From Oculina patagonica (Eukaryota): a DNA stretch of 64,000 bases. The notes beneath the pieces were generated by a model. That model did not search any database. It saw only the letters and a list, made by a program, of their open reading frames with translations, and was not told the origin of the DNA. Below, one piece after another: positions 889 to 49,200 of the stretch (positions are counted from its first letter, which is position 1; each line of letters starts with the position of its first letter). Position numbers and translations under genes: made by a program. The DNA lies in assembly GCF_052425735.1 (NCBI RefSeq), contig NC_135759.1, forward strand, positions 23,870,001 to 23,934,000, read 5' to 3'.

Positions 889-3800
889 GCTGTCACGTGG
901 GCACTATCATAACTATGCCATTATCAGGACTTTTAACAAAATATGGATTTGATGGGGGCTGGGCCTCAGTGTTTTACTGCTTTGGTGAGTGAAATTTCTT
1001 ACAGTAACTTGAGAGACTTCGAGTACAACAATCAATCAATTAGTCAGTCAGTCAATCAATCAATAAGTCAATCAATCAATTTCTAAAAATTACAAACTGT
1101 AAAGGTTTCGCGTGGACATTAGGATTCACTGCAATTTTTTCAGCCATCGCATCATTCACCAATGAAGCATATGTGCCTGTTATATTTAGACTTACTGAGG
1201 TACAAGCCTATGAATTCTTGTAGAACTGACTGACTGACTGAACAACGAACGAACGAATGAACGAACGAACGAACGAATGAATGAATGAATGAATTAATTA
1301 ATTTATTAATGAGGAAATTGTTGAATGATCATGACTTGAACATTGCAGTGTTTTAAATGAAAAATATTTAACAAATATCAAATGTTTAAGTTGTCATTAT
1401 TTTGAACGCATTGTTTGTTGTTGATTTGCTTTGTAGGTGCTGCTGGTATACTGTGGTTCGTTGCCTGGCAACTGATTGTTCATGAATCACCTTTCGATCA
1501 TCCCACCATATCAGAAGATGAGAAAAATTACATCGAAAGAAGCTTTGAAAAAGGAAATGTAAGAGAATCGCAGCTGGTTTTGAAAAGATTCCTTAGCTTA
1601 TAAAACGATAAAGACAATCTTAGGTTGAATGATCCGTGGCTTAAAAAGCAAGCGATATAACTCGTTTCACATTTTTAAAAGGTTGCGCATGGATGGCAGA
1701 ATTCCATTTTCTTGGTCATAGACTTATCAAAGACGTTCGCTTTTTGTTTACGGTTTGGCAGAATACATCACATCCTATAGCCATGACATTTAAAGGGCAG
1801 TTCATGGTATTTTACGTAATTCTTTTCTTTTTCGCTTTCTATTAAACTTCTGTTGTCAAAATCTCGGCCACCTAACAAACAAGGATGATTTTTGAGCATT
1901 AATTTAAACGACATCTTTTTTACAAGCTGTGTTTAGCATAAAAAAAGTCGAGCTAGCGCTTATCAAGTTCACCCTTATGCAGTCCATTTTAATTTTCTCC
2001 AATTTTGTCCATCAATGTGAATGTCGCTTACGCGCTTCTTGGCTTTCAGTGTCGGCTTGTGAGTTCTTCTACAGCATTAAGCATGTTGTGATATTTCAGT
2101 TGATTCAATGGCCAGCTGTTCAGTACTGAAATTTCCTTAACTTTCGTGACCCTTTAACTTTCTGTTGTCGTTTTAGGAAGATGCACCAATACCATGGAGG
2201 TCAATTCTGACGTCAGTACCCGTGTGGGGAATCATGTTTGGTAACCTGGCCTCGGACTGGGGTCTGTACACTATTCTAATCTGTCTCCCAATGTTCCTCC
2301 TTGATATTTTGCACTTCGATATACAAACGGTAGGTATAGTGCTTTTATTATTCTAAGAGGCATATTAATGCAAAAGTTTCTTTTATCCTTCAAGTGTGAA
2401 ATTAACACGGAAATAGTTTACTGGACAGTCATACATTCAGTACAGTACAGCAATTCGTCAGGAAAAATCTCATTGTATGTTGTATGACAACAATTTTCTC
2501 CTTTCTGATCAATTCTATTTTCTTATGAGCTTCGAGTAGAACTCACAGCGTTATAATGACAAAAATAAGAAACTATACAGTTATTTATCAGTTCAGATCA
2601 TTTGTCTCTGCCGTGTTGTACAACAACTTCAACTGGCGTTAGCTTGGAGAGGGAGGAATTCGTCTGGCCTTTTTGTCTAAACCTTTTTAATCAATAACAC
2701 CTTAAAAAATGGAAAGTTAGGCCTGAAGTTTGTTTCTGCAGCAGGTAACTTGCAAATAATAAATTTATTGTTAACTCACAGATGGGATTCCTTGCGGCCA
2801 CGCCTTTCTTGGTGAAATCTCTCTCAGGCCCCTTTGGTGGCATCACGGCCGATCTTTTACGAAGAAGGGGACTAAGTACCAAATCAGTTAGAAGATTATA
2901 CTTCGCTGTTGGTAAATGTTAACTACTTTTTGTCATTGCTGCTTCACCATATTTATTCTTATATTTTTTAAAAAAAAATACAAATACATTCACTTTAAAA
3001 ACAATATTGTTGTACAAAAGGGTAACGAAGTGGGTCTCTCTTGGTTGGTAGAATTTTTCCCGTACTTTGGTACTGACTAAAAAAATCGGTTCGTTTTCCT
3101 AGTACTGTAGTTAAGTTAAGCTCAGTGATTAAGAAGGTACATTATAAAATATCGGATTCGATTTCTTTCTCATCCTCATCCGACGTCGATGAGGTAAATA
3201 TCATCAGCGGCGTCCCTCTTGACAATCGGAACTCACGAAGTCAGCCAAGTGCTTCGTATTGAAAGTAGGCAGCTTTTTTTGACATGTTCCAATAGAAATA
3301 TTCTTCATCGCAAGCTGATTCCCCCAAGCTAGGCCCAGCAATGGCCTTCTCCCTGAAAGGTTACAGCTTTTATAAAACAGCGTGAAATTGGGAAACGATT
3401 GAAAAGAGATTTTGTCGTTTTGAATTTTTTTTTTTNNNNNNNNNNNNNNNNNNNNNNNNNNNNNNNNNNNNNNNNNNNNNNNNNNNNNNNNNNNNNNNNN
3501 NNNNNNNNNNNNNNNNNNNNNNNNNNNNNNNNNNNNNNNNNNNNNNNNNNNNNNNNNNNNNNNNNNNNNNNNNNNNNNNNNNNNNNNAGGAAGTCGCTTC
3601 TTAAACATCCGCTGGAGTTTTATTTTTTTATACTGAACAACTTCACCTTCATTTTAAATGTAGCGAGGTAAATAATTTACGCCGGACTAAATCGAAAACG
3701 TAGTGCAAATAAAGTTCTCCACCTTTTTTCATGATCAAGTGAAACGTTCCTTGTTCAGGACGCCGGGTGTTGCTATAAACAGTAAATAACTTTAGTTCAG

Positions 3801-42689: not shown

Positions 42690-43116
42690 TGCGCTTTTAA
42701 AAGGGGCCTGGTAACCAGTGAAAATGTAGGCTATCTCTTTTGATGCATTTTGACTATGTAGGGTTGCCAACGCGAAAAAAAATTCTGCGCTTTTAAACAG
42801 AGTCTAGTAATAAGAGAAAATAAAAGCTGTCTTTTGATGGAGAAAATCCGTCCAAAAACTGAACAGATTTTTCCCGCCAAAAGACTTAGTTTATTTTTTA
42901 CTTATTATTAGACTTCATTTAAAAGCGCAGACTTTTTTCCCGCCAAAAGACTTAGTTTATTTTTTTATCATTACCAGGCTCCTTTTAAAAGCGCAAATTT
43001 TACCCGCCAAAAGACTATTATATTTTTGACCAAAACCAAAACCCAAAATTTTTCTTGCAAAAAGACTTAATTTGACTTAAAATCCACTTCAAAGCACTGA
43101 TGTTTCTCCCGCCAAA
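42690..43116. promoter_or_regulatory. Imperfect hairpin plus direct repeats carrying four E2F-like TTTTCCCGCCAAA motifs
   Basis: Inverted pairs 42690-42714/42971-42995 and 42784-42814/42901-42931. CCCGCCAAA motifs at ~42868, 42935, 42998, 43103. Regulatory function is inferred. Confidence 0.45.
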
Positions 43117-44127
43117 CACATTTTTGCACGATGTCTTTGCAATCGACCTGGATAAATGTCCAACGAGTTTGGGTGTTATTTATTAAACAAAGTTGCATGG
43201 TTTGGCATGGAAAATATTCGACGAATATTTCTCCCAGCTTCATTTGGAAGAGTCTTCAATAGCGTTTTGTTCATAACTTTCTTCACTCCTGCAAAGAAAA
43301 AAAGTTTTAAACAACACTGAATTTACTCTATCGTGTAAATTACAATGAAATTACCAATCCATTTTATCAGGCAAAGTACAAATTAAATAAGATATACATG
43401 TAGCAAAGATTAACATTCTGCCGGTCTGAATTATAGGGTACACATCGCAATCAAGGCATTTAACATGAATTATAAAACAGTATTATCCTTGCTGGCGATT
43501 GACTGTACGTGTTTACGCCGACGCAAATCGCGCGAAATTTAAACTTGCGCAAAGCTTACAGTTTGGTAAAGTACATAATAATTACAAGTATATTTTGTAT
43601 ATGTTTAATTTTTATCTTACTGAGGACAAAAATGGAAATAGTAAAATTTTATGTTCACTGTGGATTTGAAACTTTTAGAGGAACACAATAATCTCTAAAA
43701 CCTCTTGCCTCCACGTGTAATCTAAAATGCAAATTAGATGGTGTCGAAGGATAGTGCGCCATTTAGTGTTTAAAATTGTAATTGTGTGTATAAACACTCA
43801 TTAAGCCACAGGCAGAAGTTTATAGCTTATATGTGTATGCTGAACGGAGTATTAAAACTTTCTGTTCTTGATTTCAAAAGTTTTTCAGATTTCATATACA
43901 CCCAAAGAGGAACACTACCATGCATGGCGGCTGTATATATCTACTAATTTTCTCAAAATTATTTTTGCAGCAACTCGATTATAAAAATAGGTCACCAAGG
44001 GTGACATGAGTCTAATGCCGTATGGCATAGTGATACAGATTGCGCGGTTTTCGTAAGCCGGTTAAAATTGGTTAGAGGTTTGTGTTCGGGAGTTTAATTT
44101 AAAATGCTTATAGCAAGCTAGGGGCAT

Positions 44128-46288
44128 CACAGGGGGCCCAGACAAACTGTTTGTGTATGGCCTGTGCACATTTACATTTTTATAGAGAATGTATGGAATT
44201 TACCGAATGGTTTGTAGAATTGCGTAAAATGGTGCAAAACATTAACAAATTTGTGCTGAATAAATGTTAAGTTTCCTACCTTTTGTGTAGTGTCGTTCTT
44301 TTGGCTCAAAATGGCGAATTTGAGTCGATTGAAGGGTATTTTGCTTTCGCTGTTTACTATACATCTAATTATATGGAAAGGGTGGAAACTCCAACAGCTC
44401 CAAAGTAGAACACTTCCAGCGCCGAGCCGATTTTCGACCTGATAATCCCATCGCACAGCTTTCAAACTACGCACCAGAAAAGAGGAAGGCTTGACGAATC
44501 TTCTCGTATCATTTGATCGAAAATTTATCCAAACGGTCCGGAACAAGCCCTCAAACGAAAACGGGTATCCAAAATTTTTAAGCCGTCCGAATGCGTAGCA
44601 CCAATTTGTTGTGCCGAAGGGAAACGCTATTCCCCAGCCTCTTTGTGATTGGATACAATTGAACAATGGTCGTTCAAGATTTTGTTTCGTGGATAGGGAG
44701 GCAAAGGCAAAACCAATACTCAATAGTATAGGGAGTGATGTCAATTGTGCGACACAACCTAAGGACCCTCGCGCAAAATATGGCAATATTGACGGCGATG
44801 CCGAAAGCGATGCATTATCATTTAAATATGCGTCGTTGTAACTTCTATGCGTCGAAGTAAAAGGAGTGCACCGTTGACGTCTGTTTATTTACTTCCAAAT
44901 ACACTCTTTCCGAAGCACCGCTCCCACAAACAATGAAAACCTTTTTCCCTTGCTTTAGCAGTCAACTGTTGATAGCCTTCGCCACAAAAGATTTCCCTGT
45001 TCCTCCCTCTCCAGTTACGAGAATATTGTGCCCAGCTTCGGCTATGTGTAGGATTTCAGATTGTTCAGAAGTTAATTAGGTTTCGAACCTATAAAATGAG
45101 GACTATTTCGGTGATTGCAGCCATAAATGTTTAAAACATCAAAAACAGAAAGAAAAATAAAGGAACTTAAACACGAATACCTTGCCATATTCGTATGTCC
45201 CGAAAAAATCCCACTTTTCCGCAAACTCGCGATCGCCTGCATTTTCTGCGCTACGAAAGTCGTGATGGAACTTCGCGGGATTTTCCCAATCAGCCGGACC
45301 TTGACACAAGAATAGCAAATCACAACAACGGTTTTGCACGAGAGTTTCACATGTGGGTGTATAGTTTTGCAATCTCTGTAAAACAACTAGGTGAGATGAC
45401 TAAAGTCTGATATTTTTTAGGGCTGTAAAATATTTTTTTCGTTGAAAAATGAACGCTGACTTTTATTTGAAGCTAGCTAGCTTTAAAAATGAACTCATAC
45501 CGACTAGATGTAGGTACTTACTTGTTTTTTAAGTCAGTATGAATATTTCATAATTACTTCGCCGCACTGACAAGTTACAACGACGCATATTTAAATGATA
45601 ATGCATCGCTTTCGGCATCGCCGTCAATATTGCCATATTTTGCGCGAGGGTCCTTAGGTTGTGTCGCACAATTGACATCACTCCCTATACTATTGAGTAT
45701 TGGTTTTGCCTTTGCCTCCCTATCCACGAAACAAAATCTTGAACGACCATTGTTCAATTGTATCCAATCACAAAGAGGCTGGGGAATAGCGTTTCCCTTC
45801 GGCACAACAAATTGGTGCTACGCATTCGGACGGCTTAAAAATTTTGGATACCCGTTTTCGTTTGAGGGCTTGTTCCGGACCGTTTGGATAAATTTTCGAT
45901 CAAATGATACGAGAAGATTCGTCAAGCCTTCCTCTTTTCTGGTGCGTAGTTTGAAAGCTGTGCGATGGGATTATCAGGTCGAAAATCGGCTCGGCGCTGG
46001 AAGTGTTCTACTTTGGAGCTGTTGGAGTTTCCACCCTTTCCATATAATTAGATGTATAGTAAACAGCGAAAGCAAAATACCCTTCAATCGACTCAAATTC
46101 GCCATTTTGAGCCAAAAGAACGACACTACACAAAAGGTAGGAAACTTAACATTTATTCAGCACAAATTTGTTAATGTTTTGCACCATTTTACGCAATTCT
46201 ACAAACCATTCGGTAAATTCCATACATTCTCTATAAAAATGTAAATGTGCACAGGCCATACACAAACAGTTTGTCTGGGCCCCCTGTG
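44128..46288. mobile_element. 2161-bp foldback-type DNA transposon: 717-bp TIRs, 7-bp TSD (GGGGCAT), 5'-CACAG…CTGTG-3' termini
   Basis: Arms 44128-44844 and 45572-46288 are reverse complements (the ORF track shows identical 204-aa and 76-aa translations on opposite strands). GGGGCAT lies at 44121-44127 and 46289-46295. Spacer is 727 bp. Confidence 0.9.
44858..45074 (-). pseudogene. PIF1-family (SF1B) DNA helicase N-terminal fragment inside the foldback element
   Basis: LTSEQSEILHIAEAGHNILVTGEGGTGKSFVAKAINS*LLKQGKKVFIVCGSGASERVY…TSTVHSFY: Q-motif, Walker A, motif Ia and the TVHSF motif. One in-frame stop; truncated before Walker B. Confidence 0.85.
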
Positions 46289-49200
46289 GGGGCATCGTGG
46301 ATGATTATGGATGAAAACGAAACAGTCATAAATGTTATATGCTTCACAAAATTTAAAGTATGAACAGGAGTTGATGTTACTTCTTCCGTATTGTCCGTAA
46401 AAGCAGAAACGATTAAACATTTGGACAAGATTGCGTGACGATTTACAAAAAGCATGTTCATTACAACAAGGGTTAAAGAACTTCACATCGTTTTCTTTCA
46501 GATTTTTCACCATTTTGATGATGACTCTTGAAACAGATTTTGCAATAAAAGCACTTGAAATAGTGACTGTTACTCCATTGTACTGTAAGCACTTAGTGAC
46601 AGATTTTCCTAAAAACGGGTGTAAATGCTCACGTCAATATAATGATGACCTTTTGAACGCTGGAAACTAGGCAATTATTATCGAGCTACCATACACAGGA
46701 GCGAAGACTGTTTATCATGATGTACAAATTTCGCGAATCATCACTTCCATATCAATGTAACCATTTTATGATTTTTCTAGCTGTAAGAAGAACTTAAGAT
46801 CTCTGAGAGTCGTAAAAGCATGAAATTCGATTTCAGTGTATGGCAAAGGCCGGGACAGTGTAATACTGCAAAGCGGCCAAACAAACGCATTTTGATTTAG
46901 TCGCGTAACTTGATTTACATTTATCCATGTACATCTTTTATTTTTGAAGGTTTTTGTTTGCACTGTAAAGAAAAAATTGGTCAAAATTCGAATGACTTAA
47001 ATACAAAAACCGAGGTAAAGTTTTCTATTTTTTAAAACAAAATAAATATTTGGTCGCATTGTGTAAATAAACGCGAGTCGCCGTCGAAATATTTTTTCTC
47101 AAAGACGTCTTGCTTTTTAAGCAAGACGAAAACACAAGTGCTTAACTGAACTGAAAACGAAGATTTATTTTCACAAAAAGCTTACAAATGTCTTAACTGG
47201 AAAATTATTTCGTCCTGTTCAAGTGTTGAATAATCGTGACTTGAGAAAGAACTTTTAATTATGCGTGGGAACACGTGTCGCTGATTGGCTGTTTTTAATT
47301 GAAACTAATCGTGCGTGTCCGTACGGAGTCCGTTCTTGCAGCTGATCATTGTTTTCTACATTACAGCGAACGATTATCGATCCCGAACCATTCCCTTGGG
47401 ATTGCTAACAGCTTTTTTCATATAACAAAGAGTCTAATGCTTGCGTGCGCTTTGCGCATGCGCATTAGACTCAAAAATGTTACAGACAAATGTATTATTT
47501 GGATCAAACGGTTTTCCACCTGATGTCTTTCGTGCAAACAGTTTTTGTAACATTGATGAGAAGGACAAATAGATTTGACCAATAAAGAAAATTTTGTCTT
47601 CGTGACGGCAAATTATTTGCTATTTATAGACGAAGAGTTCAACAAAACTATTTTTAAATTTTTCAGGATAATAATTTTCAACCTAATAGGTGCAATTTTT
47701 CTATGTTCATATATTTTCGTTAAGTAGAAAAGTAAGACACTTGTACCAATTTTTAGAAAAATCTGTTAAAGAGCCACCTTAATTTATGAAAAAAAGTTCT
47801 AAAGAATTTTCAACAGGAAAAAATATAAAGTACGTTTCGTCTCTGCTGCTGTTGCTATGACAACTAAACAGTAAATTAGTAAATGCTTTAGAGATTTTTG
47901 GTCAATGTTCCTTGTCAGTTAGGTCAGCTTAGCCGAGGGACAATTCCGATGCGGGATGGTTTGAAGTGCAGTGAACCACCTTAAAAGTAGTGCGATAAGA
48001 CACTTAGAAAAATATGTCGAAGAGCCACCTTTAATTTGTGAAAAAAAAGTTGCGCATAAGCAATTTGACAAATTCAACACTTTCTCTGTTTGGCATTAAT
48101 TGTAATCCTGGCTATGAATTTTCACACACAATTTCAATTTTCTGTTTGATTATTTAAGTATTTTCTTTTATGTCATAGGTTTCTATTTTTCCAAATATAA
48201 CTTATCTGCCACAAATATTAGAAAAATCGACATATCTTAATTTCTTTTTCATTTTGCCTTCAAGTAGTCCAATTATTAAAAATAAACAAATATAAAAAGG
48301 CAATTTAAACTCACCATGACTGATGCTCCCTGTATTCTGATAGCAGGAAAGTAATCACTTTCACCATGGAACTGAAAAAAAAAAACAGTCACAAACACAA
48401 CTCGTGAAATGTTCTTAATTTTCATCACTGATACGTAGAGTTTAGGTTACTTTCAGATTGGCGATGTTGAGTGCTTTGTTTAATAACAATTATTTACAAG
48501 TTTGTCCGCATCGACGTTACTTTACTTGCTACTTGCTACAATAGCAAGGTTTGAAAAATAAAAGGATTAGAAGTGAACACTTTTTTTACATAATTGCTAT
48601 GGGTGCACTCATTGAAACTCAAATCTGTTTTAAGTAGTGCGCAGCTCGGGGGAAAGGGCACGAGTGAATGTGGTCGTTGTGTTGCTCCAATAAGGGAGCG
48701 GACTGTTCGGCATTTTTCAACAAAGAAAAGAGGTGTACGGGCTCCCCTGGTTAACCACTGCTGTAAACCTTATAAAATACCACAGTCAAAAAAATTGTAA
48801 CAGAACTAATAGATCGAAGCTACCAATCTACAGCAGTGAACTATACATGTAGGACTAATATATGTAGACCTAGTTATTGGAGAACAAAATATGGCTATCA
48901 TAATAACAAAAATGGATAACTGAAATACCAACGCTATAGCCTGGTGGACCCCATTTTTATCACCAAACTACTTTTTTTGGTTAGAGATCACACGCCAAAT
49001 TAAACTATTCCGAGTAAAGTTTGTTGCACCCATAATTTTGTCCACCAGTAACTCGGCCTATGCACACAATATTCTCATTGACGTTTTAATCCTCGTATGG
49101 TAATGCCATCAAAGAAATATTGGGCCCTTGACAGTTGTAAGCCGCTTTCAGGATGGTAGGGCTAGTTCGTTGAACTCTGGATCAAGAGGATAAGGTTCTA

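Follow-up and report, generated by a model that had tools for sequence, protein, structure and literature searches.

We analyzed a 64,000-nucleotide (nt) stretch of the genome of Oculina patagonica (NCBI RefSeq assembly GCF_052425735.1, contig NC_135759.1, positions 23,870,001 to 23,934,000), referred to below as the window, which contains at 44121-46295 a mobile element with long terminal inverted repeats (TIRs) and its target site duplication (TSD). The most likely explanation of this structure, to which we assign a probability of about 0.8, is that positions 44128-46288 hold a 2,161-bp non-autonomous, internally deleted copy of a cut-and-paste transposon family of the P superfamily that has long TIRs and resembles Galileo. 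The autonomous members of the family would carry two convergent genes, each reading inward from its own TIR, namely a PIF1 helicase with a C-terminal tail of ~430 amino acids (aa) and a multi-exon P/THAP9-type transposase. From the window copy, everything between about codon 90 of PIF1 and the inner edge of the opposite TIR would have been lost.

Structure of the element and its helicase remnant

A repeat search of the window identified two inverted arms, at 44128-44844 and 45572-46288, which are 717 nt long, 100% complementary and separated by a spacer of 727 nt. According to self-BLAST and to an alignment of their inner ends, the arms remain homologous as far as 44860 and 45554, which gives a real arm length of ~733/735 nt. 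In these inner 16-18 nt, the arms differ by one substitution and by a patch that measures 5 nt in one arm and 3 nt in the other. Hence, the left TIR (44128-44860, plus strand) is made up of the perfect stretch and a 16-nt imperfect inner extension, and the right TIR (45554-46288, minus strand) is perfect from 45572. The element begins with CACAG and ends with CTGTG. Immediately outside the arms, the exact 7-bp duplication GGGGCAT can be read directly at 44121-44127 on the left and at 46289-46295 on the right, and no alternative placement of the element ends yields an 8-bp repeat. The identical 717-bp arms, the CACAG...CTGTG ends and the flanking GGGGCAT had all been described in an initial annotation of this sequence, and the repeat search and direct reading bear them out. 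The terminal 40-mer, which the same annotation had put forward as a probe for paired copies, has two sites within the 64-kb window (0 are expected from shuffled sequences), and both are the ends of this element. Since the two arms show 0 differences in 717 bp, we infer that the copy was inserted recently. The repeat search found no internal direct repeats in the arms, the 64-kb window contains no paralogous empty site, and a comparison of the window with Rfam gave no match. About 1.1 kb to the left of the insertion, at 42867-43027, there is a tandem repeat with a 66-bp unit (2.5 copies, 83% match).

The minus strand of the core reads the N-terminus of a helicase, from LTSEQSEILHIAEAGHNILVTGEGGTGKS to KQTSTVHSFY, and includes the motifs GEGGTGKS and STVHSFY. 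This gene remnant, delimited by tblastn, runs from 45102 to 44857 and comprises the N-terminal ~82 codons with Walker A and motif Ia, interrupted by in-frame stops at 45076-45078 and 44962-44964. Its homology extends to 44857 and so shares 4 nt (TTAC, 44857-44860) with the arm. The 37-aa P-loop piece alone scores 23.7 bits against the Pfam PIF1 model, for which the cutoff is 25.9, and other P-loop families match it equally; the second stop-free piece has no Pfam match. We scanned 1.84 billion representative sequences with the 37-aa piece using HMMER, which returned PIF1-like fragments, and these were then traced to their contigs. The related loci in public assemblies (anthozoan, marine, ENA/JGI contigs) are labelled L002-L014. 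The remnant in the window is 51.8-53% identical over 83 aa (tblastn) to PIF1 open reading frames (ORFs) of the L003/P0039 type and 50.7% identical to the intact PIF1 of L009, and the element-borne ORFs related to it match Pfam PIF1 at 8.9e-17. It is because of this 52-53% identity to ORFs that match the Pfam model, and not because of the fragment's own score, that the core fragment can be assigned to the PIF1 helicase family. The truncated PIF1 of the 727-bp core, recognized in the initial annotation by its two motifs, was thus corroborated by way of its longer relatives.

Because it is truncated and carries two stops, the PIF1 copy in the window is non-functional. The two stops, taken together with the absence of any difference at 717 arm positions, suggest that the lineage was non-autonomous and had already decayed when it recently inserted here. 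Between the right TIR and the start of PIF1 lies a leader (45103-45553, minus strand), for which the relatives have 89-190 bp. Within it, at 45142-45393, lies an open frame of 84 codons for which no homologue could be detected.

Related elements and their transposase

Read from its right terminus at 46288 inward, the window element is colinear with L002, L006, L007 and L014 in the succession of terminus, TIR, short leader and inward-reading PIF1 ORF. Because of this colinearity, the right arm and the core are best read as the genuine, native PIF1-side end of a larger element and the left arm as its other TIR, which would be the counterpart of the transposase-side TIR of the parent. The terminus of the left TIR, CACAGGGGGCCCAGAC, is homologous to the termini of L002, L006, L013, L014, L009 and L012, and the motif CACAGG..GCCCA.ACAA, common to the window and its relatives, is conserved at 87-90% over 30 nt. 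Over ~580 nt, the identity between the TIRs of the window and those of the relatives is ~55-70%. The PIF1 exon matches those of L002 and L006 at 76%, with order and orientation conserved. L006 is a bounded copy of 3,170 bp with TIRs of ~692 bp (93-95% identical) and the TSD ATGGGAC. L013, found in JGI metagenome contigs by means of a degenerate pattern for the terminus, is a 770-bp copy (L013:324-1093, contig Ga0126343) that resembles a miniature inverted-repeat transposable element, with a short left arm, a longer right arm and the TSD GAATTAC. All four bounded copies (window, L006, L009+L010 and L013) have a TSD of 7 bp.

The full-length organization is seen in more distant relatives. The protein P0082, an intact 398-aa PIF1 ORF with 66 near-identical members, led to L009 and L010, which lie on one 1.0-Mb contig. 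Merged, they form an element of ~12.9 kb with 827-bp TIRs that are 99.6% identical, termini CACAGGCAGCCCAGAC...CTGTG and the TSD CGTAGTG. Its PIF1 ORF starts ~150 bp past the left TIR and matches the Pfam families PIF1 (2.3e-29) and UvrD_C_2 (5.4e-8). A tail ORF of ~430 aa directly follows PIF1 in L009 (L009:11213-12502, 429 aa), L012 (L012:10835-12082) and L003 (L003:7003-7755). It is 29-30% conserved between lineages and has no Pfam match, and Atlas gives just weak leads of the helix-turn-helix type. A further plus-strand ORF (L009:14459-14869) is conserved in L003 (8994-9167).

On the opposite strand of the L009 element, convergent with PIF1, a multi-exon gene extends from ~20781 to 14998. 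Its last exon matches TNP-like_RNaseH_C at 28.8 bits (cutoff 24), its penultimate exon matches TNP-like_GBD at 19.3 bits, which is below the cutoff of 24.8, and the order of these domains is correct. By eye, the earlier exons contain ...DEM... and ...DG..N... motifs, as in the RNase H domain of P-type transposases. The same layout is found in L012, a near-complete element of the sea anemone Actinostola sp. (GCA_033675265.1) with 712-bp arms that are 98.9% identical, in which the terminus motif lies further out on the left. Compared with L009, its PIF1 is 47%, its tail 30% and its convergent transposase exons 55-64% identical. The L012 transposase reaches 31 bits for RNaseH_C (cutoff 24), and the NCBI gene model at this locus carries precomputed matches to RNaseH_N (weak) and RNaseH_C. 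Public assemblies contain 235 clusters with similarity to the transposase exon, nearly all of them annotated as PF21789. When a profile of 27 such exon sequences was compared with the PDB, the best match, at the motif NQDxVExxF...P, was the Drosophila P element transposase (6P5A) with a marginal E = 0.04. The corresponding single- and two-sequence queries were not significant (E 0.36-0.37).

Among the loci examined, the L003 type is the closest to the window copy. L003, on a scaffold labelled TARA, contains a whole PIF1 gene and has PIF1, tail and further ORF in the same order as L009. A separate 5.2-kb element (L003:1124-6304) interrupts this PIF1 gene; its inverted ends lie around CCGGGTCAGCTGTC, CATC flanks it, and neither L006 nor L007 contains it. 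In this nested element, four neighboring ORFs on the minus strand (~560 aa in total) match nothing in Pfam or the PDB. We considered them as the transposase of the family and rejected them, as they belong to the nested element with its own TIRs; a possible RAG/Transib likeness found no support in the Pfam and PDB searches.

Several observations weigh against our interpretation. The terminal 40-mer and self-BLAST revealed no second copy of the element within the 64-kb window. No transposase was seen in L002, L003, L006, L007 or L014, where the loci are deleted, truncated or ended by the contig. L008 and L014 were fetched in search of a transposase of the near lineage, and they diverge or are truncated past the PIF1 tail, so that none was reached. 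The TIRs of L009 and L012 resemble those of the window over about the first 130 nt only. The link between the window and a P-type transposase is thus an indirect one that runs through the more distant lineages of L009 and L012. The likeness of their transposase to the solved P element transposase is itself marginal (E 0.04-0.37), and Pfam detects no THAP domain either in the N-terminal ORF (369 aa) of the L009 transposase or in the small ORF upstream of it, although other exons may hold one. Finally, perfectly identical 717-bp arms are also expected from an assembly foldback artefact. The initial annotation had placed the element in the P superfamily next to its Galileo-like members. The long TIRs, the 7-bp TSD in four of four copies and the P/THAP9-type transposase of the relatives agree with this placement, with the caveat that no THAP domain was detected in the scanned ORFs of that transposase.

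A subterminal block in the left TIR (44414-44600, mirrored at 45816-46002), delimited by nucleotide alignment to the relatives, is 71-75% identical to L002, L006, L007 and L014 over 150-194 nt, whereas the PIF1 proteins are just ~52% identical. The conservation is of a non-coding type (40% aa identity at ~73% nt identity), and the block is a candidate transposase-binding site or promoter for the TIR-adjacent gene. Each arm also contains a stop-free frame of 228 codons (44172-44858 on the minus strand and its mirror 45574-46244 on the plus strand), which exceeds every frame obtained when the arm was resampled 5,000 times under a Markov model. We nevertheless rejected it as a gene on the grounds of the same 40% aa identity, the lack of a Pfam match and a low protein-likeness in Atlas. 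L002 and L006 have open frames of 112-120 codons at the matching position of the arm, on both strands.

Two observations concern the surroundings of the related loci. A Pao-type retrotransposon with long terminal repeats (ORFs with Pao_retrotransp, rve and DUF1758/1759) occupies L009:523-6465, just upstream of the 12.9-kb element. Downstream of the 3'-truncated family copy in L014, at L014:7525-10872, there are O-methyltransferase-like ORFs (Methyltransf_2, Dimerisation), which are presumably exons of a host gene.

Origin of the window copy and of its helicase

Internally deleted P elements usually arise by abortive gap repair or end joining. The 4-nt overlap TTAC at the junction of the window copy would be the expected trace of such an event. 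As the copy has no transposase of its own but has kept both TIRs, transposase supplied in trans could excise the copy and reinsert it, duplicating 7 bp of the target. We infer this deletion mechanism and the mobilization in trans from the structure of the element. The initial annotation had taken the copy for a recent derivative, by deletion, of a larger family of cut-and-paste elements, and relatives with the same kind of TIRs, PIF1 and a transposase support this view.

The initial annotation had also called the element a foldback transposon. A true de novo foldback would have formed when one end of the parent (terminus, TIR and PIF1 start) was copied in inverted orientation via a hairpin or a template switch. 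A template switch could indeed yield arms that are 100% identical over 717 nt and yet differ in a patch within the inner 16-18 nt, and no parent copy was seen in the part of this genome that was searched, the 64-kb window. We prefer an internal deletion because full-length and deleted relatives alike already have TIRs of 0.7-0.8 kb (0.69-0.83 kb in the individual copies), so that no special event is needed, and we consider a fresh foldback unlikely. Either route would lead to a non-autonomous element of this kind. The foldback label was therefore an overstatement, the long arms being the normal TIRs of the family.

The second alternative, which we regard as very improbable, is that an unrelated TIR or foldback element (hAT, Transib/RAG-like, MULE/FB) captured by chance a piece of a Helitron or host PIF1. 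Its appeal lies in the CACAG termini, which look like the ends of hAT elements and like Transib or recombination signal sequence-type ends, in the fact that Helitrons are the classic carriers of PIF1, and in the score of the fragment, which on its own stays under the Pfam cutoff. A TSD of 7 bp in all four bounded copies does not fit the 8 bp of hAT, the 5 bp of Transib or the 9 bp of FB, and the transposase of the complete copies is TNP-like. Moreover, PIF1 keeps its position and orientation across at least five lineages, although divergence has brought the proteins down to ~50% identity. L002, L006, L007, L003, L014, L009 and L012 have homologous termini, TIRs and a PIF1 in the same place, and PIF1 is thus not confined to the window copy, as it would be in the chance capture that the initial annotation had named as a refutation.

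The affinity of the helicase, judged by E-values against PDB entries, points the same way. Structures of Bacteroides, yeast and human PIF1 match the intact family helicase of L009 over its full length at 1e-34 to 1e-38, whereas the Helraiser helicase matches at 2.6e-12 over ~140 residues; the family helicase is therefore much nearer to canonical PIF1 than to Helraiser. Helitrons and Helentrons (RepHel) share a PIF1-family helicase domain with the window family. In Helitrons, however, the helicase is fused to a Rep/HUH nuclease and long TIRs and a TSD are lacking, whereas the window family has 0.7-kb TIRs and a 7-bp TSD, and no Rep/HUH domain was found in any of the related loci scanned. All named homologues of the C-terminal half of PIF1 are anthozoan (Actinostola, Exaiptasia, Montipora, Desmophyllum). 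The unchanged place and orientation at ~50% divergence, together with these exclusively anthozoan named homologues, argue for PIF1 being a long-kept gene of the family and not a chance capture. The fragment in the window is best read as a remnant of this gene and not as Helitron debris. Of the two options left by the initial annotation, a family that encodes or one that captured a PIF1, the comparison across several lineages favors a stable family gene. Several anthozoan annotations apparently derive from this transposon family: an "ATP-dependent DNA helicase PIF1-like" protein in Exaiptasia diaphana and uncharacterized or hypothetical proteins in Montipora foliosa, Desmophyllum pertusum and Actinostola.

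Least probable of all is an assembly artefact, a false palindrome made from a chimeric or foldback long read: long inverted arms without a single difference are typical of such errors, but the exact 7-bp TSD, the non-palindromic core of ~700 bp, the agreement of termini, TIR length and TSD length with independent copies in other assemblies, and the distance of ~40 kb to the sole assembly gap in the window (3436-3587) all stand against it.

Comparison with known systems and significance

KP-type derivatives of the Drosophila P element have internal deletions with short junction overlaps and are mobilized in trans. The P element shares with the window family the cut-and-paste mode, a TSD of 7-8 bp and non-autonomous copies with internal deletions, and differs from it in having 31-bp TIRs, an 8-bp TSD and a single gene, without a helicase. 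A closer precedent, and in fact the closest, is Galileo of Drosophila, a member of the P superfamily with TIRs of 0.3-1.2 kb and a 7-bp TSD, whose non-autonomous "2-TIR" copies measure 1.7-2.2 kb (PMC3573991). The 7-bp TSD, the TIRs of hundreds of bp and the ~2-kb copies that consist almost only of two TIRs are common to both. The window element differs in that its host is an anthozoan and not an insect, in that its TIRs are not internally repetitive, and in that its autonomous relatives have a PIF1 helicase with a long tail, which has not been reported for Galileo. By analogy, the window element appears to work like Galileo; membership in the Galileo clade is not claimed.

AcademH is a cut-and-paste lineage that carries a helicase. 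Such lineages are already known in other superfamilies, another example being KolobokH, a DDE/D cut-and-paste lineage with a RecQ helicase as a stable accessory gene (PMC9587614). An accessory helicase is common to KolobokH, AcademH and the window family, whereas the superfamily of the transposase and the family of the helicase differ (RecQ or other versus the SF1B helicase PIF1). On mobile DNA, PIF1 helicases are treated as a hallmark of Helitrons (PMC8788227), and the survey of Pif1 helicases and Helitrons that does so makes no mention of a P-type transposase together with PIF1. A search of the full-text literature, with Repbase outside its scope, turned up no publication in which PIF1 is combined with a P/THAP9-type transposase.

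Taken alone, the window copy is an unremarkable non-autonomous transposon, and its value is that of a marker for a family that would pair these two proteins. The broader proposition is that it belongs to an undescribed, anthozoan-wide lineage of the P superfamily that stably encodes PIF1, fused to or followed by the conserved ~430-aa tail, and whose helicase acts in the transposition cycle of the element itself; we find the case for and against this evenly balanced. If this holds, no earlier case would be known of a PIF1 helicase linked to a DDE cut-and-paste transposon, as opposed to the rolling-circle Helitrons. The retention of PIF1 over a long divergence (~50% identity, with the same layout in a sea anemone) would amount to a recruitment independent of Helitrons.

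As to the function of the helicase, we can only speculate. It may unwind the long palindromic ends of the element. Another possibility is that it drives the repair synthesis over long tracts by which a 13-kb element is restored at the donor gap. The latter is consistent with work showing that, in Drosophila, PIF1 promotes DNA synthesis in the repair of a P-element-induced double-strand gap (bioRxiv 10.1101/554550). Deleted copies such as the one in the window would then be products of failed long-tract synthesis. The copy number of P elements depends on repair synthesis across the donor gap, and because of this an element-borne PIF1 suggests a way in which a 13-kb element could avoid decay into short deleted copies. 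For the annotation of anthozoan genomes, the finding means that the "PIF1-like" gene models of Exaiptasia, Montipora, Desmophyllum and Actinostola may be transposon genes and not host genes.

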